A DNA stretch of 64,000 nucleotides from Heteronotia binoei (taxonomy: Eukaryota): contig NC_083236.1 of assembly GCF_032191835.1 (NCBI RefSeq), forward strand, positions 46,438,001 to 46,502,000, given 5' to 3'. The stretch's first letter is position 1. The number at the start of each line of letters is the position of its first letter. Below the pieces are notes generated by a model. It did no database searches, had not been told where the DNA came from, and saw nothing but the letters and a program-made list of their open reading frames with translations. Shown in pieces: positions 9,001 through 43,941 of the stretch. Both the position numbers and the translations under genes were made by a program.

Positions 9001-12000
9001 TAATGGGATAGGGCTAGCCTGGACCATAGGTATCAGGAAAGGTCTCTACCTGAGACCCTGGAGAGCTGCAGCGCATCTTGGGCAGCTGCTCCGGGTCCTG
9101 GCTGGGAAGGCCCTAACCATCCACAGTCCTGTCCCTCTGACAGAATAAAGAACAAGAAGGCTCCTGCCACAACCTGTCCCCATCCCCTCTGGCACTCAGG
9201 CAGCAGACAGCTCAGCAATCCCCATGTACATTCCCCCCCCACACACACACACATCTTTCACCGGATATGGGCCACCACTTGCTTGAGCCAGGAGTGGCCC
9301 CAGTGCAGGGGGGTACAATTGAGCAAATGGAAATTAATATTTTTAAAAAATTATGTGATTATCCATGACAATGAGTAAGTGTCCAGTCTACCCTATGGAC
9401 CGTGTCTCTGTGCTTGATTGATGTCTTGAGTTGCCAGTTCTGTGTTGGAAAATACCTGGAAATTCAGGGGTGGAGCCTTGAGAGGGAGGGATTTGAGAAG
9501 GGTGTAAGCCAAAATGCCCTCAAAACGAGGTTGGGGAATTGACAGGTGGGCACCTGGCTTAAAAAGGATCTTTTAATCTATATATACAGGATACACGTCC
9601 AGAAATTATTGCTTAAAATTACCAGGGACACTAATTAAGTAAAAACAATTAAAATTTATTCCAGAAAAATATAGACACACATACAAGATAATAAACTCAT
9701 AAAGCATACATACAGTCCTAAGGAAAATAGAGAGAGATTCAGAGACAACACAAGGATGGACAAACAGGGTGATAATTACCGATCGTAGTCTTCAAGGAAG
9801 GCTCCAATGGCGACGAACGAGGACTAGGGGGAGGGGACCCTCAACTGGCCAAGAATCAGGGATGTATCTAGACAGCGGAACTGGGGTACTGCTAGATGCT
9901 CACCTGTGAGATGCACACCTGGGTCACAGGTTATAAAGACTACCTTAAGCCCTTAGGGGATGGGAGGTACAGGGGCGGATGACAGTGGTCAGCTGGTACA
10001 TGACCTCAGAAAAAGGGAAGTCCCTGCAATGACTATAAGGGCTGGACTTACACAGTAGCCAATAGCCAGTTGGCATTCCCTGATTGGATGCTCATAGCTA
10101 GCCAATGAGCAGGCTTGGCCTTAGTTACCTGATTGGACTTCCAGGTAACAATGGGTCAAGGAGGAGGCTCCAGGATAACCATGAAGGGAAAGAATGGAGA
10201 AAATTGTTAAGGTGGGAGGGGGACTTAATTCTATCACACTTATCTAAAAAGACAATAGATGGCCAAATTGCTACCTAGGCAACACCCGGTCTATACAATG
10301 AAACCTGGCTCTGGGTGAAGATGTTCTTCCTGCTCTTCGATCTTCCATTGGCACCAGTCTTTGTCTTGAGTTCCGTTGGACAAAGGCTTAGGTGGTCTGG
10401 CAGGATCCACTCCTTAGATAAGCTTGATGGCTTTATGCATGGGTGACATCTGTTGAGTACGTGAGCCTCTCGCTTCGCTGTTATGAAGTCTGGCACTGCA
10501 GAAAGATGACTGCTGGTGGTGTTAGCCTTCCAAGATGGATTCTCTGGTCAAGGCTGAAAACCGCTTGCCTGGACAGTTTCTGGCGGCACAGCTTCTTCCG
10601 CTCCACGGCCGAGATGGGTATCGCAAGGAGCGACTGGAAACCATCCGTTCTCCTGGTTAGCACTCCTCCAGAGGCACAGAGTGCTGCTGCAACGTTGTGG
10701 CTGTTAGTACTCATAAGTCCCTTCCAGTTTGGTAGACAAAACCCACGTTCTCCTGGCAGATGTGTGTGAGTTGAGCCTCCAGGCACCCTGGCAACCAGAC
10801 AGGTGACTACAATGTTCTGGAAATAGGGGCATTTTTCTCACAAGGGGAAGGACCTCAGCAGGGCCTAATGCCATAGAGTCTGCCCTTCTGAGCAGCCATT
10901 TTCTCCAGGGGAACTGATCTCTGCTAGGTCAATTTTAGGAGCAGGAGATCTTCTGGTCTCTTGGAGGCTGGCAACCCTAAATGTTGTCTCTTTCTCCAGG
11001 CGTTCCTGCCCTTGCTGAGGAAGGCATCTCAGGAAAGTCCCCAGCAAGGGATGAGTTGTAGCAAAGCTGCCATTATCAACATGACCAGCGCATCTGGCTC
11101 CATCACAGATCTCCCTCAATGGCATTTGGGGCAGATCATTAACTATCGTTGCAGTAAGGTATGCTATGGCATTTGGGGTTGGGCTAGAAGACCCTGGAGG
11201 TCCCTTCCAATTCTACGACTCTGTGATTCTCTATAGATTCTCTATTTGTGACGCAAGGGCAACAATCACAAAGTGACTTAAGCCAGTTACTCTCTCACAG
11301 TCTGCCTCACAGGGACATTGTGAGGATACAACGAAAATAGGGGGAATAAAGTATGCTCCCCTGAGCAACTTGGTGGAAGTGAAGACTTACATAGATGTCC
11401 CTTTGATATGCTGATTTACCATGGATCTGGCTGTATCGGTCATTTCTCTCTTTCTGGCATGTTTTCTTTTGAAGCAGTTTGGTGTAATGGTTAAGAGCAT
11501 GGACTCTAATCTGGGAGAACCGGGTTTGATTCCACACTCCTTCACATGTAGCTGCTGGGTGACCTTGGGCAAGCCAGTCAGCGAGCCTGCAGCAAACGTG
11601 GACTATTGCACCCTTCTTAAATCTTCGTTCGCGAAGCCAAGCCGAGAGAGAGAGAGTTCTTGAAGAGCTCTCTCAGCCACACCTACCTCACAGGGTGTCT
11701 GTTGTGGGGTGCGGAAGGAAAGGGGATTGTAAGCTGCTCTAAGACTCCAAGCGAATGGGGGGGTATAAATCCAGTCTCCTCCACCACCTCCTTCTCCTCT
11801 TTTATAGACAGCATTAAATATGCTTACCCGGTGCCAGTCCCTTAGATATGCTGAAGATGAGATCCTATGCATTGCATTGACCCCTGGATGGGTGAAGACA
11901 GACATGGGAGGCATGCAGGTAGGTGATTCCTTGTGAAAACTCATCCCCGGGCTGAGACTGTGTGGTGTAATGGTTAGTGTTGGACTAGGAACTGGGAGAG

Positions 12001-16113: not shown

Positions 16114-19100
16114 GTGAGTGTTAGAGCAGAGTCAGCTGTACTTTGGAAGGAGATGCCACAAGTAACAGAGAGCCAGTTTGGTGTAGTGGTTAAGTATGTG
16201 GACTTTTATCTGAGAGAACCAGGTTTGATTCCCCACTCCTCCACTTGCAGCTGCTGGAATGGCCTTAGATCAGCCATAGTTCTTGCAGGAGTTGTCCTTG
16301 AAAGGGCAGCTGCTGTGAGAGCCCCCTCAGCCCCACCCACCTCACAGGGTGTCTGTTGTGGGGGAAGAAAATATAGGCGATTGTAAGCCTCTCTGATTCA
16401 GAGAGAAGGACGGGGTATAAATCTGTAGTCTTCTTCTTAGGGGATGCCCAAGAGAGCTGAGTGGCTGTTTGGGGCACTAAACCTTGACAGTGGTGATATG
16501 GAATGTTGTCTCCTGTGTTGGTGCCATTGCAGTCTGGAGCCCATGGTGGACCAAAAGGGTATGGGAAGTGGGCAGAGCTCGAGTCAGGTCTCTGAGAGAT
16601 TCAAACAGATCGGGCAAGGTTTCTCAGTCTTCCTGCATGAGGGGCAGGTTGGGTAACATGAGGTATGTTCAGTGAACCCCCTAAACTCAAATTAGTTGAT
16701 ATGCTTTGATCAATTTTTTGTTTTGGGAATTAAGATTAGGGAGAGCATTAAAAGGCAAAATAATAATCTTATTGGGTGTTAGAAATTATAAGAATAAAAC
16801 AAACAAGTGGGAACCCAAAAGGACTTTGGGGGGGACATCTAATTTCCCCCTCTCCCACTATTTTGTCTTTCCCTTCCCTGAAAGCCCCCATAGCCTCTCC
16901 CCTTTTCCTGCTTCTTTCTCTCCTTCCCACCCAAGGGACAGCCTCCCTTTAACAGCCCTTCTGCCTTCAGCTTTCCCTTTGCTACCACCAATGGCCTCTG
17001 TTTTGGGGAACTTGTGTGGGAGAGAATCCACAAGGACTTGCAGGGAACACCGTGCTTCTCCCTGTATCTACCCTCCCCACACGATTTCCTTTTTCTTTCC
17101 TTCTGACAACTGTCATATCCTGTCCCCTTTCTCTGTCTCATTCTCGCCTGCTCAGTCGTTTACCTACCTTTTATTTACCTCCCATTTTATTTACCTCAGC
17201 TATATTTATTATTTATTTAACTTGCTGTTTATACCTCGCCTTTCTGCACAGCAGGAACCAAAGCTGCTTGTATCATTCTCCCCCCCTTCCTTTTTACTCT
17301 CACAACAACCCTATGAGGTAGGTTAGGCAGAAATAGGGTTGCCAGGTCCGACTCAGCAAATATCTAGGGACTTTGGGGGTGGAGCCAACAGCAAAGTTGT
17401 GACAAGCACAATTGAACTTTGAAGGAAGTTCTGGCCATCACATTTAAAGAGGCCACACTCATCTTAAACACTTTCCCTTCATTGGAAATAATGGAAGATG
17501 GGGGCATCTTCTTTTAGGTCCAATCATTTTGAAACTTGGGGAGTTTTTTTGAAGAGCGGCACCAGGTGCTATGCTGAAAATTTGGTGTCTCTATCTTAAA
17601 AAAAAAAACCAGTTCCCCAGGGTCCCAGATAGCCAAGGACTGATTCTCCATTATACCCTATGGGGACCAGTTTCCATAGGATATAATAGAGTGCCCAGTG
17701 GATATTCAACCCCCACCTCATTTTCTGATAACCCTGAAGTTGGGGGAAGGGTCTCCAAATCAGGGGATCCTCTGCCCCTAACTGGGGACTGGCAACCCTA
17801 GTGATGTGACCCAAAATCACCTCATGAGTTTCCATGGCGGACTGGTGATTTCAACATGGGTCTCCCAGGTTCTGTTATGAAACTCTAATTGCCAAACCTT
17901 CTGCAAAGGCCAAAACCACCTTGGAAAGACTCCTGTCCTTATTGCCTAGAATGCTGTAGTTGCTGAGCAATGGCCACTGAGAACTTTGTTTCTTAAAACT
18001 ACAGGCACCCCTTTATCATTTTAGGGCCCTTGAAACCCCAAGTTTATTTTTATTTTTTTAGATGTCAGAGGGGGGATTTTGTTTGTTTGTTTTTTGCAAA
18101 CATGGGGTTCTTCTCAGGTTTGTTGAAATATCCATCTTGGCCATATGGGCTCCGGTCACCAGATTTAAATACTCAGATTTGCCAACTGCTATTAGAATAG
18201 GGGGGGACCCCTGTGAGATGCAGGGGGAATTCCACCTCCTAAGGACACCCTGGGATTGGGAGTAAACCCTATTGACTGATTTGGGACTTCGGAATTGATC
18301 AGCTGCCTAAATAAAGAATCTAAATCACAGGGTTTGGTGAAAGGGTTTTGTTCGAGCAGGTTTTTCCTCCGAATTTTCTTCTCAACGAAATATTATTATT
18401 CACTCTTGAACGCTCCCCTTGAACTCCCCAATCAACATAGCTTGTTTTCGGTACAAGCCAAGAAACTGTCTACAGGGTTTTGTAAAAGCAAAACAGGACA
18501 GAGCAATAGATAGTTTTCCTCTCCTGCACCCCGAGAAACCAGAAATCAGATGGGATTTAACCTCTCCCTGCCCTTCTGCTCTGGTGGTGGCAGTGGAAAG
18601 TTCCATCAAGCAGGCACAGCCAACTTATGGCAACCAAGAGACATTCAGAGTTCATTGCTTGCCTCTGCCTAGTGACCTTGGACTTCCTTGGAGGTCTCCC
18701 ATCCAAATACGAAACCGGGCTGACCCTGCTTAGCTTCCAAGATCTGAAAAGGTCGGGCTAGCCTGACTCCCTATCTCATAGCAAACAAACCGGGACACTG
18801 GTTGTTACATCATAAATGTCTGGCTTTTTTTTCTTTCAGGAGCTGAAGGGTTTGGCTGCCAAGCACCATGAAATGAAGATCGTTCCCCTTGGTATGCGTT
18901 TGTGCCCCCCTACACCAATTCTCCAGTTTGGTGTAGTGGCTAAGTGTGCGGTCTCTTATCTGGGAGAACTGGGTTTGATTCCCCACTCCTCCACTTGCAG
19001 CTGCTGGAATGGCCTTGGGTCAGCCATCGCTCTTGCAGGAGTTGTCCTTGAAAGAGCAGCTTAGAATCAGCCTGGGCCCTGTCGAAACACATAGAGGCGA

Positions 19101-25100: not shown

Positions 25101-28100
25101 GCTGGAATGGCCTTGGGTCAGCCATAGCTCTCACAGAGCTGTCCTTGAAAGGGCAGCTTCTGGGAGAGCTGTCTCAGTCCCACCTACCTCACTGGATGTC
25201 TGTTGTGGGCGGTGGGGGAAGTAAAGGAGATTGTAGGCTACTCCGAGACTCTGAGATTTAGAGTATAGGGCAGGGTATAAATCCAATATATTCTTATAGT
25301 GCCCACAGGCAACTATAAGATTTTGGCAACCCATGATTTAAAGCATGAAAACTGATGTCAATTAGTTACAAGGATATTAAGTAACATTAACAGCTTGCTC
25401 TAGATGGAAAGACATGAGAAAAGTGGGTAAATGTTGGTCCAGTTTGGTGTAGTGGTTAAGTGTGCGGACTCTTATCTGGGAGAACCGGGTTTGATTCCCC
25501 ACTCCTCCACTTGCACCTGCTAGCATGGCCTTGGGTCAGCCATAGCTCTGGCAGAGGTTGTCCTTGAAAGGGCAGCTGCTGTGAGAGCCCTCTCCAGCCC
25601 CACCCACCTCACAGGGTGTCTGTTGTGGAGGAGGAAGGTAAAGGAGATTGTGAGCCGCTCTGAGACTCTTCGGAGTGGAGGGCGGGATATAAATCCAATA
25701 TCTTCTTCTTCTTCTTCTTCTCTGTATTGCAATAGATAGAGATGGAAAAGGAAATAAGTAGTCTAGGAATGCCAGCCTCCAGGTGGCACCTGGGGATCCC
25801 CTGGAACGACAGGTCATCTCCAGATTACAGAGATCAGTTCCTCTGGAGAAAATGAATGCTTTGAGAAAGTGAACTCAATGGCACTGTATCTCACGGAGGT
25901 CCCTATCCTCCCCAGGTTTCATCCCCAAATCTCCAGGAGTTTCCCAACCTGGATTTGGTCACCCTACCCACCCAGGGGAGACCTCGCAACCCTAACTGGT
26001 ATTCTGTTTATAGTATGTATCTATCATATATGTATTATACTGGTCTGCAAACCTGTAAGCGTTTCTATGTATTTTGCAATTTAAAAAGAAGAGATGACTA
26101 AAACAGGAAGGGAAACAAACAAAACAAACTAAAATATGCTCATATTCTGCATGCATCCCTACTTGGGAAGAGCTGTCTGGGCCTCCCTGTAGACTGCTGC
26201 ATTGCTGTCCTTGATCCTTCCCTCTCCTTCTCCAGGCATTCCTGCCTTTGCTGAGGAAGGCGTCCCAGAAAAGCCCCCAGAAAGGGATGAGCTGCAGCAA
26301 AGCTGCCATTGTCAACGTCTCCAGTGAAGGAGGTTCCATCACTAATGTCCTCATGTGGGATCTTGGGCATTTCATCAGTTACCGCTGTAGTAAGGTAGGG
26401 ACATGACAGCAGCAGTGGCTCATTATATAGGGCAAGAAGAGTGTAGAAGCCATGAAAAGCTATGTTCAGACCTGTTTACACGACAAATAAATAAAATCTA
26501 TGCCCAGGGAGAACACGAAAGAACGTTGCTTAGATTCTTAAGAAATAGGGTTGCTAGCAACTGGGGCTGAGAGGATCAGGGGGCAAAGACTTATGTGTTT
26601 GACATCATGCTGACCGCTTTGAGTGACCTGAAGTGATGTCATTGTGCTATGGCAGCACTGCAACATTCCCCCAGAACTCTGTGGTTTGACCTGGTGTCCC
26701 TATCAAGTAGACTTGCCAATCCTCAGGTCCCAATGGGGGTTCTCCTGCTTTCCCAGGCTCCTTCCCGCTCTCAGTCAGCTGGCCGGTGGGGGGAAGCCCC
26801 GCCCCCACAGCCACCATGTGCCTTTCCACCTCTGGAGGCTTCAGACTCCACTTGGAAAGGCTTCCTCTTGGGATGATGTGTCTGTGTCTTTAAGGCTGAA
26901 TGGGGGCGGGGAGGGAGCAGGCAGAAGAACATGGCTGCTCCCAGTGGCTGTGAAAGCAGCCCTGACCCTCTTTTGGTGGCACAATCTTTTCAGAGGTCGT
27001 TTGCATAGGAAAGGTAAACTTGAACCTTTGGTTGCTCTGTGTTACTTTGAAAAAGTTGGAAGTTCAGCAACTCGTGAGTAGAGATGCCAATCTCCAGGTG
27101 GGCAAAAAAATCAAAGGTACGGTACATAACCCACCATGAAAACCAGCTTCTTTTATTAAATTATACAAGGTCAACAAAAATAAACAAAAATTCCACCATC
27201 ATAAATTACAAAACAACCATAGCTTTTAGTCCTTAATAGAAAAGGAAGCAATAGCACCAAGAGTCTTTCTTTTCATCCTATGGTAAAACTTCCCATCTTA
27301 TTCCATGCAATCCTGGTGTAGTACTCCAGATGTTTAATGTCTGTCCAAAGATGCAGCCAATAATCCAAGTTTCCAAGGACAAGGTCGTACTGAACCCTTG
27401 TTTCGCGTGAGCTTCTTCAAGCTGCAACAATCCTCTTAGCAATTTCTCTTAAGCGTTAGGCCAAACAGCCAGCATATTTGAAGGTGTTCCTTCAAATGTT
27501 CCTTCAGTACGACCTTGTCCTTGGAAACTTGGCTTATTGGCTGCATCTTTGGACAGACATTAAACATCTGGAGTACTACACCAGGATTGCATGGAATAAG
27601 ATGGGAAGTTTTACCATAGGATGAAAAGAAAGACTCTTGGTGCTATTGCTTCCTTTTCTATTAAGGTCTAAAAGTTATGGTTGTTTTGTAATTTATGATG
27701 GTGGAATTTGTGTTTATTTTTGTTGACCTTGTATAATTGAATAATAGAAGCTGGTTTTCACGGTGGGTTATGCATCTTTGATTTTTTTTTGTCCTTTTGC
27801 CGTGTTACTCTATGTGTGTTGTAGAATCTCCAGGTGGGAGCAGGCCCTCCCCCGCTTCAGAGTCGTCAGAAATGGGGGGGCGGGGGGAGGAGGGAAATGT
27901 CTGCTGGGCACTTCATTATTCCCGATGGAGATTGATTCCCATAGGGTATAATGGAGAATTGATTTGGGGTGCTGCAGCGGCTGTTTCTTGAGGGAGAGGC
28001 ACCACATTTTCAGCATAGCATCTGATGACTTTCCTCAAAATGCTCTCCAAGTTTCAAAACGAGTGGACCAGGGGGTCGAATTCTGTGAGCCCCAAAAGAA

Positions 28101-36300: not shown

Positions 36301-39300
36301 ACAATAAATAATGCTCTGCAACACAGAGGAAGAAATTCTTCTCACCTTAACCACAAGAATGGGCCCTACGACATTGGTGTTGAACACGGATAGCATTTCT
36401 TCCGGTTGCACAGTTTCTAAGGAGCCATAAGAGTTTACTCCAGCATTGTTGATGAGAACATTCAGGCCTCTGCCATTTAGAAGGGACTCCACCACCGCCA
36501 CAGAAGCCTTCACACTGGTCTGGTCTTCCACCTCTGTTGGGCAGACAGGCAAGCAGATGAGATGGGAATCAGGCAGGAAGTGAAAAGCTCAGTGTGGCAT
36601 AGTGCTCACAGTGCTGACTTTGGATAGCTGCCTATGTAAGAAACCCACGTTCAGCTGACACGTATGTTACAATCTGAATTTTGGTGCAAATGCATTTTCC
36701 TATAAATGGCAAAGTATACATCTAGAGCACGGGTGGCCAAAATGTGGCTAGGGAGCCACGTGTGCCTCTTTCACACATATTATGTGGCTCTTAAAACCAA
36801 CCACCACGTCAGCTGGCTTGAAAAAGGCATTTTTATCTTTAAATCATCTCCAAACCAGCTGGCAGCTTGGAGAATGCATTTAAAGTTGCTTTCTTACCAC
36901 CTCCACCTCCCCCATCTATTTAATTTCTTTCCACCTTCCCTTCCTCCCTTTCTGTCTTGAAGATCTCATTCTATGTGGCTCTTACATTTAGCAAATTTGG
37001 CCACCCCTGATCTAGAGCAAGAGTGTCCAACAGGAACGTTCTGCGCTACCAATAGATCATTGGCTGCTGCAGAGTAGCTCTTACACCTTCTAGAAGATCC
37101 CAGAAAAGATTGTCAAAAGATTTGCTCTAGGATTTTTTGAAAGCTTTTATTTGTTAGGCTTTTTCTCTGTGCTGCTTAACCCATGGCTACATTTCTGGTA
37201 TTCCTCATGTCCTGTTTCCAAGATGGAACAATGCCTGGTAATGTTCTTGGGAGGGGCGACACAACTCAGTGGTAGAGCACCTGCTTGGCATGCAGAAGGT
37301 CCCAGGTTCAATCCCCGGCATCTCTAGTTAAAAGATTTGTTAACATGCACATATCCTCTGTTAGGATATGAAAGCCCTCTGCCTGAGACCCTGGAGAGCT
37401 GCTGTCAATCTGAGTAGATACTGACTTTGATGGACTGATGGTCTGATTCAGTATATGGCTACTTCCAGGGCTTTTTCCCCATATAAAAAAAAGCCCAGCA
37501 GGAACTCATTTGCATATTAGGCCACACACTCAGGGGCTTTTTGAGCAGGAACGCAGTTCCAGCTTGCCTGGCACCAGGGGGTGTGGCCTAATATGCAAAT
37601 GAGTTCCTGTTGGACTTTTTCTACAAAAAAGCCCTGTGTGAAACAATGCTGATGTCAAAGGGCGTGGCCTAATAAGCAAATGAGTTCCTGCTGGACCTTT
37701 TCTACAAAAAAAAGCCCTGCACACCCCATGATGCCAAGTCAGCCGGAACTGCGTTCCTTTGTGTTCCTGCTCAGAAAAAGCCTTGGCTACTTCATGTGTT
37801 CATGCTGAGGGATGAGTAGCTTTGGATATTTTATCATTATACAGATTTAGCTCTCACTAAAGAAAAAGGATGGCAACCCCTGACCTAGAGCCATCAAAGC
37901 CCATTTGTCCTGCAATAGACAGGGTCACATTTTGGACTGTGTCCCTTCTGGAAAACGATGGGAAGCGAGATATTCCATACCTAACTGAACCACATGAATC
38001 CTGGAGTGTTTATCAGCCAGATCACGCAGGGCCTGGAATTGGAGACAAAAAGGTGACTGAGACAAGACTAGTATATCAAATGGACACAAATTACTTGCGA
38101 TTGTTGTAGGACCAAGAAGTTTGCTTGCTCCTGTTCCATGTTATGGCCCTTGGGGGTAGGGTGGCCAGACCGTCCCGGTCTCCCGGGACATTCCCGGATC
38201 TGGCCACCCAATCCCGGATCCCGGGCTGCCTATACCGGGACCATTAAAGGTCCCGGTTTAGGCAGCCCCGGAGCCGGTGGGCCGCGGGCGCGGGCGGGGA
38301 AGGCGGGGAGTGAGGGAGGGAGCGTCCCTGCGCCTGCGCAGGGCCCCTGCGCACGCGCAGGGACGCTCCCACCCTCACTCCCCGCCTTCCCCGCCCGCGC
38401 GCGGGGCCCGGCGGCAGTGGTGGAGGCCTCTCCATGGCCTCCGCTGGTCGCTGGAAGCTCTCCAGAGACTCTGGAGGGCCTCCAGCGACCAGCGGAGGCC
38501 GCGGAGAGGCCGCGGGGCACCCGGCGCTGGTCCCGGAAGGCCTTCCAGAGCCTCTGGAAGGCCTTCGGGGACCAGCGCCGGCCAGCGAAGGCTTCCCCGC
38601 GGCCTCCGCTGGTCCCTGGAGGCCCTCCAGAGTCTCTGGAGGGCCTCCAGGGACCAGCGGAGGCCGCGGGGAAGCCGCGGGGCACCCGGCGCTGGTCCCG
38701 GAAGGCCTTCCAGAGGCTCTGGAAGGCCTTCCGGGACCAGCGCCGGCCAGCGAAGGCTTCCCCGCGGCCTCCGCTGGTCCGTGGAGGCCCTCCAGAGTCT
38801 CTGGAGGGCCTCCAGGGACCAGCGGAGGCCGCGGGGAAGCCGCGGGGCACCCGGCGCTGGTCCCGGAAGGCCTTCCAGAGCCTCTGGAAGGCCTTCAGGG
38901 ACCAGCGCCGGCCAGCGAAGGCTTCCCCGCGGCCTCCGCTGGTCCCTGGAGGCCCTCCAGAGTCTCTGGAGGGCCTCCAGGGACCAGCGGAGGCCGCGGG
39001 GAAGCCGCGGGGCACCCGGCGCTGGTCCCGGAAGGCCTTCCAGAGGCTCTGGAAGGCCTTCCGGGACCAGCGCCGGCCAGCGAAGGCTTCCCCGCAGCCT
39101 CCGCTGGTCCCTGGAGGCCCTCCAGAGTCTCTGGAGGGCCTCCAGGGACCAGCGGAGGCCGCGGGGAAGCCGCGGGGCACCCGGCGCTGGTCCCGGAAGG
39201 CCTTCCAGAGCCTCTGGAAGGCCTTCCGGGACCAGCGCCGGCCAGCGAAGGCTTCCCCGCGGCCTCCGCTGGTCCCTGGAGGCCCTCCAGAGTCTCTGGA

Positions 39301-42300
39301 GGGCCTCCAGGGACCAGCGGAGGCCGCAGGGAAGCCGCGGAGCAGCCGGCGCTGGTCCCTGGAGGCCTCCAGAGGCCAGCGCCGGTAGCGGAGAGGCCCG
39401 GCGCTGGTCCCTGGAGGCCTCCAGAGGCCAGCCCCGGCAGCTCCCTCCCTCCCTCGTCGCGAGGGCCGCCGCCGCCGCTGGATCCGCCGCCCTGGAATAA
39501 GGTAAGGGGGCCGAAAGCGGGGGGGGGGCGGGGGGNNNNNNNNNNNNNNNNNNNNNNNNNNNNNNNNNNNNNNNNNNNNNNNNNNNNNNNNNNNNNNNNN
39601 NNNNNNNNNNNNNNNNNNNNNNNNNNNNNNNNNNNNNNNNNNNNNNNNNNNNNNNNNNNNNNNNNNNNNNNNNNNNNNNNNNNNNNNNNNNNNNNNNNNN
39701 NNNNNNNNNNNNNNNNNNNNNNNNNNNNNNNNNNNNNNNNNNNNNNNNNNNNNNNNNNNNNNNNNNNNNNNNNNNNNNNNNNNNNNNNNNNNNNNNNNNN
39801 NNNNNNNNNNNNNNNNNNNNNNNNNNNNNNNNNNNNNNNNNNNNNNNNNNNNNNNNNNNNNNNNNNNNNNNNNNNNNNNNNNNNNNNNNNNNNNNNNNNN
39901 NNNNNNNNNNNNNNNNNNNNNNNNNNNNNNNNNNNNNNNNNNNNNNNNNNNNNNNNNNNNNNNNNNNNNNNNNNNNNNNNNNNNNNNNNNNNNNNNNNNN
40001 NNNNNNNNNNNNNNNNNNNNNNNNNNNNNNNNNNNNNNNNNNNNNNNNNNNNNNNNNNNNNNNNNNNTGCAGAGTGTTGGACTGGATGGGCCACTGGCCT
40101 GATCCAACAGGGCTTCTCTTATGTTCTTATGTGACGCAGAGTGTTGGACTGGATGGGCCACTGGCCTGATCCAACAGGGCTTCTCTTATGTTCTTATGTG
40201 ATGCAGAGTGTTGGACTGGATGGGCCACTGGCCTGATCCAACAGGGCTTCTCTTATGTTCTTATGTGACGCAGAGTGTTGGACTGGATGGGCCACTGGCC
40301 TGATCCAACAGGGCTTCTCTTATGTTCTTATGTGACGCAGAGTGTTGGACTGGATGGGCCACTGGCCTGATCCAACAGGGCTTCTCTTATGTTGTTATGT
40401 GATGCAGAGTGTTGGACTGGATGGGCCACTGGCCTGATCCAACAGGGCTTCTCTTATGTTGTTATGTGACGCAGAGTGTTGGACTGGATGGGCCACTGGC
40501 CTGATCCAACAGGGCTTCTCTTATGTTGTTATGTGATGCAGAGTGTTGGACTGGATGGGCCACTGGCCTGATCCAACAGGGCTTCTCTTATGTTGTTATG
40601 TGATGCAGAGTGTTGGACTGGATGGGCCACTGGCCTGATCCAACAGGGCTTCTCTTATGTTATTATGTGACGCAGAGTGTTGGACTGGAGGGGCCACTGG
40701 CCTGATCCAACAGGGCTTCTCTTATGTGACAATACTGACTTTGGTGGACCCAAGCACTGATTCAGTGTAAGGGAGCTTTGTGTTTGTGTCTTCTAGTGCA
40801 ATTTTGTTCTCAGATCCTGTATTTACTTCATCAGTATATGGGATAAGGCACTTTCTCAACTGTGCTGCATAATGCAGCCTATTTATTTTGTCCTGTTGGC
40901 TCTATCTGCGCCACCTTCATCACTTTCGGGGTGTGGATCCCCCAGTGGAGTGGTCTCCCGACTCCCTCCGCCGGCTGTTTCTGATAGCCCTGCGCCCCCT
41001 CTTTCATTTGATATGTGTCCCGTGCGGGTGCCACCCTCCCGCCGGGAGATGCCGCAAAATGAGCCCCCTTGAGGCTTATGGCGGCAGGGCTCGGGGGAAG
41101 CGAGCTAGACTGCTGTTCTTTTGAGGGGTTATAGAGTGTTTCGAGCCCGTCCCTGTGGCATCGGTCCCATCATTGTGGGGCCCAGGGGGCCGGCGCAGCG
41201 GCACGCTGAAGCAGCCTGTCGGTCACTTCCAGGTTCCTGTCCTGCATCTTGACCGGTGTTATTAGTGACAGGCTGCTTCGGCGTGCCGCTGCGCCGGCCC
41301 CCTTGGTCCCACAACGATGGGACCGATGCCACAGGGACGGGCTCGAAACACTCTATAACCCCTCAAAAGAACAGCAGTCTAGCTCGCTTCCCCCGAGCCC
41401 TGCCGCCATAAGCCTCAAGGGGGCTCATTTTGCGGCATCTCCCGGCGGGAGGGTGGCACCCGCACGGGACACATATCAAATGAAAGAGGGGGCGCAGGGC
41501 TATCAGAAACAGTCAGCGGAGGGAGTCGGGAGACCACCCCACTGGGGGATCCACACCCCGAAAGTGATGAAGGTGGCGCAGATAGAGCCAACAGAGCCAA
41601 CAGGACAAAATAAATAGGCTGCATTATGCAGCACAGTTGAGAAAGTGCCTTATCCCATATACTGATGAAGTATATACAGGATTTGAGAACAAAATTGTTT
41701 CCGGCGGTGATATTTGGGGGATTTTTGGGGACGTCACAGGAAGTGCTGTGAAGTCACTTCCTGTTTCCGGCAGGTGACGCGGGGGAAATGATGTCACAGG
41801 AAGTGATGCCACTTCCTGTTTCCGGTGGTGGCATGACATCACCGGAAGTGACGTCACCGGAAGTGACGTCACTTCCTGTTTCCGGCGGCGCGCGCGCTTT
41901 GCGCGCGCACACCCCCCCCCCCCCACCCACCCCCCAGTGTCCCTGGCTGGCCTTCAGACATTATGGTCACCCTACTTGGGGGACTGTATTCCCAAAAGCA
42001 AAAACGTCAGGTTGGGTTTTTTTTAATTTCATATTGTTTAATGTAGTAATTGCCCTGACCTGGATGTCCCAGTCTCATCAGACAAGGGTAGCCCAATCTC
42101 ATCAGACCTCAGAAGCTAAGTAGAGTCAGCTCTGGTTTGTATTTGGATGAGAGACAACCAAGGAAGACCAGGGTCACTATGCAGAGGCAGGCAATGGCAA
42201 ACCACCTCTGAATGCCCCTTGCCTTGAAAAAAGGGTTACCATAAGTCAGCTGTGACTTGGCAGCACTTTTCCACCATCAATGTAATTAGGTGGCCATCAG

Positions 42301-43941
42301 GGTTGCCAACTCCTGGTTGAGAAATACCTCATCTTGGGGGTAGAACCTGGGGAGGGTGGGCTTTGGAGAGGGGAGGGGCCTCAGTGCTGTATAATGCCAT
42401 ACAGTCTATCCTCCAAACTGTCAGTTTTCTCCAGTGAAGCTGATCTGTGTAGTCTGGCTGTCAGAATTTTGAGAGATCTCTAGGTCGCACCTAGAGGTTG
42501 GCAACCCAACATTCCCTCTTGCAACCCTTCTCTTCTGTTAGGATGAAATTTTCTCATCTTCATCCTTCTTCCCCAATTTGAACCAACAGAAGAAAGCCTC
42601 CCTGCACTAGAAGGTATGAAAGGCAATACATATTTCTATTTCTAATGTTCCTCTGCCCTATACAATTGGGCTACAATTCTTGGGGACTGTACCCCATAGA
42701 AAGACTGCCTTTTTGATGGTCCATTATAATTCTCCCTTACATAAATGGCACACAGAGATGTAGTAATGTTTCCTTTTTAAAATCTGTTCACATACATGAA
42801 CTCTGTGTGACATTACTTTGTTTTATTTATTACAGCCAACACCAAACTTACTTCCTGGTATCCAGTGAAAAGCTAAAGGATTGCCTGAGAAAACTTAAAG
42901 GCTTCAGACAGCAAATCACAATTTGCCCACCTATATTATTCTTATAAAAGAATGTATCTGGCTAACGCCCAGAAGCTGGAAGATTTCCAACAAAAAACAC
43001 TCCAAACCCGTAAGCCAATATGACTGGGGAAAACACAGTGCACAAAAATGCTAATCAGGGATGAACCACTGCTGTGTGAACATGGGCTAAATGTTTTGGT
43101 TGGACAGTGCGCCTGTCAGGCACATAAATGCTGATCCAGTCACTCCCCTTTGATGTCCCGCTATTACCCCTTGCCTTCTAGAGAAAATGGACCCCTACAG
43201 ATAGCACAGGGGAAATGCCAACTGAAAGCACAGTGCAAACATAGACATTGGGGCACCAAGGAAACCACAGCTGGATCAAGTTTGGGCCTGCAAATGGGAG
43301 GTGATTTGTTTGCTTTATATAACATTCTGAGCTTAATGAATGGATGTATTTGGGTTTAAAATAGTTACATCTGAATACATACCCTTAAACCAATCCATTT
43401 TCCCCCAGTTGCCAATGAAATTGCACACAATGCAGACAACATGACCAGGTTTCCCCTCTTCCTGGAGGGGAAAAAGCAATCATGATGCTCTGAAACACTT
43501 CCTTTTGCTGTTCCAGCCAGACATACGCTGTCAGCCGGCGGAGCCATCCTTTCACGGTGCTCTCTCTCTCCCAGATTAACTGGACTTTGAGCCCTGACTG
43601 GGTAAATATGAATCAGTGACGCTGTAAGTTCAAACCTGCAGATTCTGAGCATCATCATAGTAACCAGAGACTTTGTTTTGTGACTAAATGAAGCCTAAAA
43701 GGGCTTACAGGGTCACTGAGGAACTCTGACTGCACCAGAATACATTGACCAAGATACCCTATGCACTCCCCACTTGCACCATTCCCTTTCTACAGACCTT
43801 TCCTTGGGGTCCAGCAGGATTCCGGCAAGTTGCAAAGATGTGCTTCGGAGGATCTGTCATCTCCAAAAGCTGCCGCACCATTTCTAGCCCAATTCCCCGG
43901 CTGGATCCTGTCAGCAGGACGCTGTCAGCCAGCGGAGCCAT
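33243..43941 (-). CDS. C-factor/CsgA-like SDR gene 3, complement(join exons 43798-43941, 37981-38032, 36346-36533, 34621-34779, 34214-34324, 33243-33356), 255 aa
   Basis: Six GT-AG exons on the minus strand total 768 nt with the same exon sizes and phases. [42 protein letters not shown]. More divergent from genes 1 and 2 than they are from each other. Confidence 0.94.
34214..34324 (-). CDS. SDR gene 3 exon 5 ([37 protein letters not shown])
   Basis: 111 nt, ttttacag acceptor, AAG|gtatgt donor. Confidence 0.93.
34621..34779 (-). CDS. SDR gene 3 exon 4 ([10 protein letters not shown]...LAYRASK)
   Basis: 159 nt, cgtatag acceptor, AAG|gtaagt donor. Confidence 0.93.
35309..35575 (-). mobile_element. 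CR1 LINE 3' fragment
   Basis: Encodes the CR1 ORF2 C-terminus ([21 protein letters not shown]...LEIFKQRLD) and ends in the ATTCTATG tail. Shorter CR1 tails at ~12200-12250, 48680-48740 and 59470-59520. Confidence 0.88.
36346..36533 (-). CDS. SDR gene 3 exon 3 (EVEDQTSVK...LINNAG...GPILVVK)
   Basis: 188 nt, ccaacag acceptor, AAG|gtgaga donor. Confidence 0.93.
37249..37466 (+). mobile_element. tRNA-derived SINE (second family)
   Basis: A box (ctcagtggtagagc) and B box (ggttcaatccc) followed by a non-tRNA body. A split relative lies at 8520-8620 and 9035-9085. Confidence 0.72.
37981..38032 (-). CDS. SDR gene 3 exon 2 ([17 protein letters not shown])
   Basis: 52 nt, ctccaattccag acceptor, G|gtatgg donor. 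Too short to appear in the ORF track. Confidence 0.88.
38436..39430. repeat. GC-rich 165-bp tandem array made of paired palindromes (about 5.5 units)
   Basis: The same motif recurs at 38536, 38701, 38866, 39031 and 39196. Unit = 61-bp palindrome + 8 nt + 87-bp palindrome + 9 nt. Confidence 0.93.
39536..40067. other. Assembly gap (532 N)
   Basis: Run of N between a G-run and a tandem array. Confidence 1.
40068..40729 (+). repeat. 67-bp tandem array (10 visible units) derived from a LINE 3' end
   Basis: Unit (t/c)gcagagtgttggactggatgggccactggcctgatccaacagggcttctcttatgtt(c/g/a)ttatgtga repeats every 67 nt. It matches the dispersed LINE tail seen on the minus strand at ~29320-29400. Confidence 0.92.
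40799..41697. repeat. Long inverted repeat: arms 40799-41220 and 41267-41697, 46-nt spacer
   Basis: The arms are reverse complements apart from about 9 substitutions and one 9-nt duplication (counted by eye). Confidence 0.92.
43798..43941 (-). CDS. SDR gene 3 exon 1 ([18 protein letters not shown]...GPQGK)
   Basis: 48 codons, AAG|gtctgt donor. Confidence 0.92.

Follow-up and report, generated by a model that had tools for sequence, protein, structure and literature searches.

A transposon-borne tandem array of two palindromes in an intron of the gecko Heteronotia binoei

How does a tandem array come to consist almost entirely of palindromes, and what does it mean that the central base of one of them alternates from unit to unit? 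These questions are raised by a 165-bp array in a 64-kb stretch of Heteronotia binoei NC_083236.1 (the window, within which all coordinates are given), whose unit holds a palindrome of 61 nt (P1) and another of 87 nt (P2). An earlier, sequence-only reading of this DNA had described the array as a satellite with a 330-nt higher-order period, produced by flipping of the palindrome centres and amplification of a dimer. We consider it probable that a hAT-like transposon carries the array as non-coding cargo, that the array was shaped by template switching and tandem duplication, and that the transposon was inserted whole into intron 1 of a short-chain dehydrogenase (SDR)-type gene. The pattern of differences between the palindrome arms, rather than the alternation of the centres, is the stronger signal of how it was made. 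The array and its palindromes are located as follows:

38436-39374: 165-bp tandem array of 939 bp, with 5.7 units, 96% matches and no indels, the sole array at that period found by Tandem Repeats Finder (TRF)
38686-38746: reference copy of P1, 61 nt with 30-nt arms, its own reverse complement except for the central base (38716, G)
38590-38676: reference copy of P2, 87 nt with 43-nt arms, its own reverse complement except for the central base (38633, T)
38425-38511: first, diverged copy of P2, with A at its centre (38468), from an inverted-repeat search and the unit table
39340-39432: two short quasi-palindromes (~40 nt each) with a 52-nt period, whose outer arms are of the P1 type and whose inner core is of the P2 type

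In the unit table, each unit runs through P2 (87 nt), a 9-nt spacer, P1 (61 nt) and an 8-nt spacer, and 148 of its 165 nt (61 + 87) are self-complementary. Smaller palindromes are nested in the arms: each P1 arm contains the 12-nt palindrome GGAAGGCCTTCC as well as the sequence TCCCGGAA, and each P2 arm a 15-nt palindrome, CTGGAGG-C/G-CCTCCAG, which was identified in part from the period-20 rows of TRF. Both palindromes are perfect in units 2 and 4 alone, and P1 also in unit 5, while every remaining copy carries at least one one-sided arm mismatch (38567, 38781, 38897, 39096 and 39328, and several in the first P2). This first P2 has compensated double changes at 38450/38486, 38431/38505 and 38428/38508, in addition to one-sided changes at 38456 and 38459. 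At the other end, the sixth unit degenerates past ~39340, and the two quasi-palindromes found there represent either a decayed terminus of the array or the form ancestral to it. The core patterns of P1 and P2 have no other occurrence in the window, where 0 are expected by chance, and a scan of metagenome contigs with the same patterns (N at the centre) gave 0 matches. An alternative parsing of the array into alternately inverted segments of ~82 nt was ruled out, since neither of the spacers GCGGGGCAC and CCAGCGAA is the reverse complement of the other, and both have a constant orientation throughout the units.

The predicted folds are strong. As single-stranded DNA the 330-nt dimer reaches −224 kcal/mol, compared with −91 ± 4 kcal/mol for shuffled sequences (z = −32), and the full array as minus-strand RNA reaches −1102 kcal/mol, with a centroid that is mostly undefined because each palindrome pairs equally well with the neighbouring palindromes. 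The two-palindrome unit of the sequence-only reading is therefore borne out by TRF and the self-complement check, and its hairpin tendency by these folds, whereas its description of the palindromes as perfect holds for units 2 and 4 and for P1 of unit 5, the other copies having one-sided mismatches. It had also proposed that P1 and P2 share a core, and the inner 30-nt arms of the two are indeed identical at 25 of 30 positions.

The five differences are informative, as all of them are mirrored on the partner arm, and the compensated double changes of the first P2 add three further mirrored cases. In an alignment of eleven palindrome cores, 98.1% of the cells are paired and six pairs are changed on both sides, with a covariation score that was reached by 0 of 500 shuffles. 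The five private changes, each specific to one unit (38567, 38781, 38897, 39096 and 39328), are on the other hand all one-sided. Palindromes are moreover nested inside the arms of P1, of P2 and of a 143-nt quasi-palindrome that precedes the array, which fits repeated inverted copying. Old differences that are symmetrical, new ones that are one-sided and nested palindromes together fit an episodic restoration of symmetry by replication template switching; one-sided private changes are a prediction of such episodic homogenisation, and not of a constant selection for pairing. Template switching is known to homogenise the arms of inverted repeats; when it takes place between molecules the spacers are inverted, an event that is reversible and that mostly affects repeats which are already perfect (PMC8604942). 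Perfect hairpins are likewise created and maintained by template switching, loop inversions included (PMC8794818).

The array does not stand alone, but lies inside a larger element with the following parts:

38157-41974, plus strand: non-autonomous hAT-like composite transposon of 3,818 bp, with terminal inverted repeats (TIRs) at both ends, an 8-bp target-site duplication (TSD) and varied flanks in other contigs
38149-38156 and 41975-41982: TSD CTTGGGGG, two identical 8-mers
38157-38270, plus strand: 5' subterminal region with 8 copies of TCCCGG/CCGGGA and hairpins formed by 38161-38170 with 38199-38208 and at ~38224-38269
38273-38415: 143-nt quasi-palindrome with 71-nt arms and a 1-nt centre (38344), 92% complementary, with 6 mismatched arm pairs (12 positions)
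39536-40067: run of 532 N inside the element, 106 nt past 39430, where the sequence-only reading had ended the array
40069-40727, plus strand: second cargo array with a 67-bp unit, 9.8 copies, 98% alike and non-palindromic (TRF)
40799-41697: large inverted repeat with inner arms of 328 nt (98%), a 46-nt spacer and outer arms of 129 nt (91%)
41690-41974, plus strand: 3' subterminal region, terminated by the 3' TIR; its small hairpins contain 6 copies of CCGGAA/TTCCGG

Transposons of the hAT type have short TIRs beginning with YARNG. The 5' end of the element reads TAGGGTGGCCA and its 3' end TGGTCACCCTA, the reverse complement of which (TAGGGTGACCA) agrees with the 5' end at 10 of 11 positions. 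Contigs from two other sequencing runs (X2 and X5) match the window from 38157 inward and then continue into two different outside sequences, and the element is therefore present at other loci. An 8-bp TSD, short TIRs of the YARNG type and occurrence at several loci with different flanks are the hallmarks by which we assign the carrier to the non-autonomous hAT-type transposons, an assignment made from its sequence; a transposase is not to be expected within these 3.8 kb of repeats. Of the subterminal hexamers, TCCCGG occurs on either strand 8 times in the 114 nt of the 5' subterminal region, compared with 5 times in the 38 kb upstream, and 0 of 2000 shuffles reach 8.

Three further observations concern the element. 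Each arm of the 143-nt quasi-palindrome holds a nested hairpin, CCCTGCGC-NN-GCGCAGGG, whose 2-nt loops are CT and AC, one base off being reverse complements. In the 67-bp array two columns vary, position 67 with the letters C,T,C,C,T,C,T,T,C and position 58 with C at first, G in units 5-8 and A after them. Finally, the terminal motif TAGGGTG.CCA has 7 matches in the window, with 0.9 expected; those at 10966-10979, 17787-17800 and 25953-25966 (minus strand), with two mismatches each, may be the ends of other hAT-like elements.

Because it is carried inside a hAT-like transposon, the 165-bp array cannot be called a free-standing satellite. Its 939 bp and 5.7 units, bounded on both sides by the ends of the transposon, also fall far short of the long block of many kilobases that the term implies; it is a minisatellite-size array borne by a transposable element.

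We then considered the palindrome centres, whose letters are exactly those given in the sequence-only reading. P1 has C at 38551, G at 38716, C at 38881, G at 39046 and C at 39211, while the P2 centre is A at 38468 and T in all five later copies (38633, 38798, 38963, 39128 and 39293). Among units 1-5, the P1 centre is the sole column that splits odd from even units. When this column is excluded, adjacent units (lag 1) differ at 2, 2 and 1 positions and units two apart (lag 2) at 0 and 3, with units 2 and 4 identical across all 165 nt. The probability of a strict alternation over five binary letters is 2/32 by chance, or 1/10 given three C and two G. The non-palindromic 67-bp array provides an internal control within the same element: the two letters at its position 67 are quasi-alternating, and such variants therefore arise in the element without any palindrome. 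In a higher-order repeat, units one period apart are clearly closer, at several sites; here the alternation is present in the assembly, but it concerns a single column of five letters, and lag-2 units are not closer than lag-1 units. Amplification of a dimer, as had been proposed, is nevertheless the simplest route to C,G,C,G,C. The most parsimonious history has one change and then a duplication in the dimer register, and is weakly supported by these five letters with no second site to back it.

Whether the centres were flipped or substituted is a separate matter. For a centre of 1 nt, an inversion and a complementary substitution (C to G or A to T, or the reverse, all transversions) give an identical sequence, and the fact that the variants are mutual reverse complements therefore adds no information. 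Both variable centres differ by a complementary base (C/G in P1 and A/T in P2), and neither lies within a CpG. Away from the centres, units 1-5 have 10 changes, 9 of them at C/G sites, and 4 of these 9 are likewise exchanges between C and G. Their frequency off-centre makes the complementarity of the centre changes weak evidence for a flip. The sequence-only reading had attributed the flips to arm-to-arm recombination or cruciform resolution. Cruciform resolution yields hairpin-capped breaks and not inversions, for which reason it is a weaker mechanism than replication template switching. The changed centres do lie, as template switching would have it, between perfect or near-perfect arms (30 and 43 nt in the reference copies). 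Flipping at the P1 and P2 centres is thus plausible from the sequence, as reverse-complement variants are the expected product of flips that are documented elsewhere (PMC8604942), while a substitution of the 1-nt centre fits equally well.

Six public sequencing runs were compared in the form of short contigs, five of them with 0.08-0.23 of the words of the window and one with next to none; no contig spans the full 165-bp unit. One contig of run X1 (record 3, 38465-38582) fits unit 1 best and carries the G at 38567 that is private to this unit, yet at 38551 its letter is G and that of the window C, and the P1 centre therefore differs between copies. Run X5 has C alone at this position, at a depth of 78. 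The X1 contig gives no support to an inversion of the whole palindrome: positions 38535 and 38567, which form a G/G mismatch 16 nt to either side of the centre, are absent from its listed differences, although differences as near as 4 letters to the ends of the matching pieces are listed elsewhere; any inverted segment would therefore lie within the inner 15 nt on each side.

In run X4, which comes from another organism, a joint 38494>39483 skips the whole array, with 26 other letters between, and a joint 38515>38570 skips most of the first P1, with CGC between. From these joints, whose shorter sides have only 24 and 51 letters, it follows that family members with different array content exist, and contigs that appear to lack P1 or the whole array suggest that the array is dispensable for the family. 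As a separate observation, contig depth in two small DNA runs climbs from tens to 100-2,500 over the GC-rich stretch that follows the array (39330-39535), so that the 165-bp units are greatly outnumbered by this part or by its simple GCC and poly-G tracts.

The history that we favour would accommodate these results as follows. The array would have taken shape in the transposon lineage rather than at the SDR locus. A short GC-rich palindrome would first have been enlarged, and kept symmetrical, by replication template switching, in which the nascent strand would briefly copy the opposite arm or strand. This palindrome would then have been duplicated and have diverged into the P1 and P2 types, each of which would have been made symmetrical again, and the resulting 165-bp unit of P2 and P1 would have multiplied through ordinary tandem duplication or unequal exchange. 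One P1 centre may subsequently have changed from C to G, or the reverse, through either a template-switch spacer flip or a plain transversion, and one or two duplications in the 330-bp register could have produced C,G,C,G,C. The identity of units 2 and 4 over 165 nt supports this register. Template switching as the mechanism, the sequence in which the events took place and the duplication of a dimer are what we infer from the pattern, and we saw no sign of a host function for the array, which is a well-preserved and ordinary product of known processes rather than of a new one.

Several points weigh against this history. The mirrored differences between P1 and P2 amount to one inherited event, and could instead reflect two independent formations of a palindrome on diverged half-units, while template switching is itself read from the arm pattern alone. 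Units 1, 3 and 5 have nothing in common except the central C, and no second site backs the 330-bp register. The array also ends ~100 nt before the 532-N run, and its copy number and centre phase at this locus come from the assembly alone, the contigs being short and none of them spanning the unit.

Of the other explanations, the one that survives best holds that flip-flop is recurrent and reversible, with hot spots at the P1 and P2 centres, and that the units flip independently, by template switching or hairpin-mediated inversion, so that the observed letters would be a snapshot and not the trace of an amplified dimer. We regard this as possible but rather doubtful. Both centres did change to the exact complement rather than by the usual transitions and outside CpG, the X1 contig on unit 1 has G at 38551, and reversible spacer flips on perfect inverted repeats are documented (PMC8604942). 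These changes nonetheless represent just two or three events, of a kind (C to G or the reverse) that is also common off-centre at 4 of 9 changed C/G sites, and a strict alternation requires more independent flips than the dimer model does. If the copy in the X1 contig was flipped, the inversion would lie inside ±15 nt of the centre, and the contig is uninformative in this respect.

An unlikely alternative is that the array is functional, either by providing the transposon with extra, putative transposase-binding sites or as an intronic source of hairpin RNA for small RNAs. In hAT elements such as Ac, short subterminal repeats are the binding sites of the transposase. The hexamers of the element recur in its array. 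TCCCGG has 8 occurrences there and 8 in the 5' subterminal region, compared with 5 in 38 kb of other sequence; CCGGAA has 8 in the array and 6 in the 3' subterminal region. Each intact P1 arm joins both hexamers into TCCCGGAA. By analogy with hAT elements such as Ac, P1 may have been seeded from putative transposase-binding sites or may act as such. The binding-site version draws on this analogy, however, and the motif sharing may merely reflect a palindrome that was seeded from subterminal sequence. As for RNA, the perfect stems of 30 and 43 bp would be predicted substrates of a size suited to Dicer, and contigs from RNA libraries cover parts of the array, but these are short, of low depth, and may derive from other copies or from DNA. 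Related contigs that seemingly lack P1 or the whole array (the X4 joints) also speak against a function. A known RNA family or microRNA precursor was rejected, as the best Rfam match has 56.3 bits, below the gathering score of 74; the matches fall on both strands and on many unrelated microRNA models, which marks them as a generic response to any long hairpin.

A reading that goes beyond our preferred history, and that we consider improbable, would treat the palindromes as modules of the element's own subterminal hexamers, putatively bound by the transposase, which frequent template switching would keep symmetrical, with flipping of the centres as a by-product. The array could then be a self-renewing block of hairpins and binding sites that affects mobilisation or silencing of the element.

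It is very improbable that the alternating centres, and possibly the number of copies as well, are an artefact of assembly or polishing, since, although reads placed in the wrong orientation on a perfect palindrome would plausibly differ only at its centre, and the 532-N run lies ~100 nt away with no spanning read or contig, random errors of orientation would not leave the P2 centres uniform (T in 5 of 6), nor give identical units 2 and 4 alongside clean private variants, and the short-read X1 contig, oriented by the asymmetric spacer and neighbouring sequence, has G in a P1 like that of unit 1 while X5 has only C at 38551. Such an artefact is accordingly an unlikely source of the centre pattern.

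The favoured history places the feature among two known kinds, transposon-borne tandem arrays and palindromes shaped by template switching. With the spacer flips attributed to template switching in yeast inverted repeats (PMC8604942) and in RNA hairpins (PMC8794818) it shares perfect arms, spacers in two reverse-complement forms and mirrored differences between hairpins. The documented spacers are however 2-5 nt long, in which an inversion is recognisable, whereas that of the gecko array has 1 nt, or 3 nt with self-complementary outer bases; the yeast arms have ~10-16 nt as opposed to 30-43 nt, and the published events were placed on phylogenies, whereas the gecko array is read from one locus and short contigs. 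In the satellite-like, Helentron-borne arrays of the Pacific oyster (PMC7492417), an example of arrays inside non-autonomous DNA transposons, a handful of monomers is likewise enclosed by the ends of the element, which has carried them to several loci. The gecko monomer differs in that 148 of its 165 nt are self-complementary and in having the subterminal hexamers of its own element, and its carrier is hAT-like, with an 8-bp TSD, and not a rolling-circle element.

Two other comparisons are more distant. As in the higher-order repeats of alpha satellites, a variant recurs at double the monomer period, but those repeats have many diagnostic sites and copies that are much closer to each other than neighbouring monomers are, while the gecko array has a single site in 5.7 monomers and no such contrast. 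The hairpin termini of parvoviruses and poxviruses have flip and flop forms, with a multi-base internal bubble at the end of a linear genome that results from hairpin transfer in rolling-hairpin replication. They resemble the gecko array in being palindromes with two mutually reverse-complementary forms, but the latter is internal and chromosomal, with spacers in direct orientation and an asymmetry of a single base.

The gene into which the element inserted is defined by two features:

37981-38032, minus strand: exon 2 of the SDR-type gene, with acceptor CAG|G, donor AG|GTATGG and reading frame
43759-43941, minus strand: exon 1 open reading frame (ORF) of the SDR-type gene, with a TGxxxGIG motif

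A contig of 1,633 nt from an RNA library matches 37981-38034 alone, with unlike sequence on either side. The splice sites of exon 2, this contig and the exon 1 ORF place the array within intron 1 of a minus-strand SDR-type gene, in agreement with the intronic location that had been read from the sequence, and the element starts ~125 nt into the intron, upstream of the exon 2 acceptor. Two minus-strand ORFs, 43365-43658 and 43759-43941, have similar starts, one of which is MAPPADSV... Exon 2 separates intron 1 from a match to the transfer RNA (tRNA) model, ~650 nt beyond the exon at 37255-37326 (plus strand; 32.9 bits, Rfam gathering score 29), which is probably the head of a tRNA-derived short interspersed nuclear element and not a gene.

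The array illustrates how transposon cargo can seed hairpin-rich tandem DNA within genes. If its centres truly flip, the family would be a natural multi-copy reporter of the rate of template-switch inversion in a vertebrate germ line: each genomic copy would offer at least 10 perfect palindromes with a one-letter mark of orientation, and mismatches in their arms could show the extent of each event.

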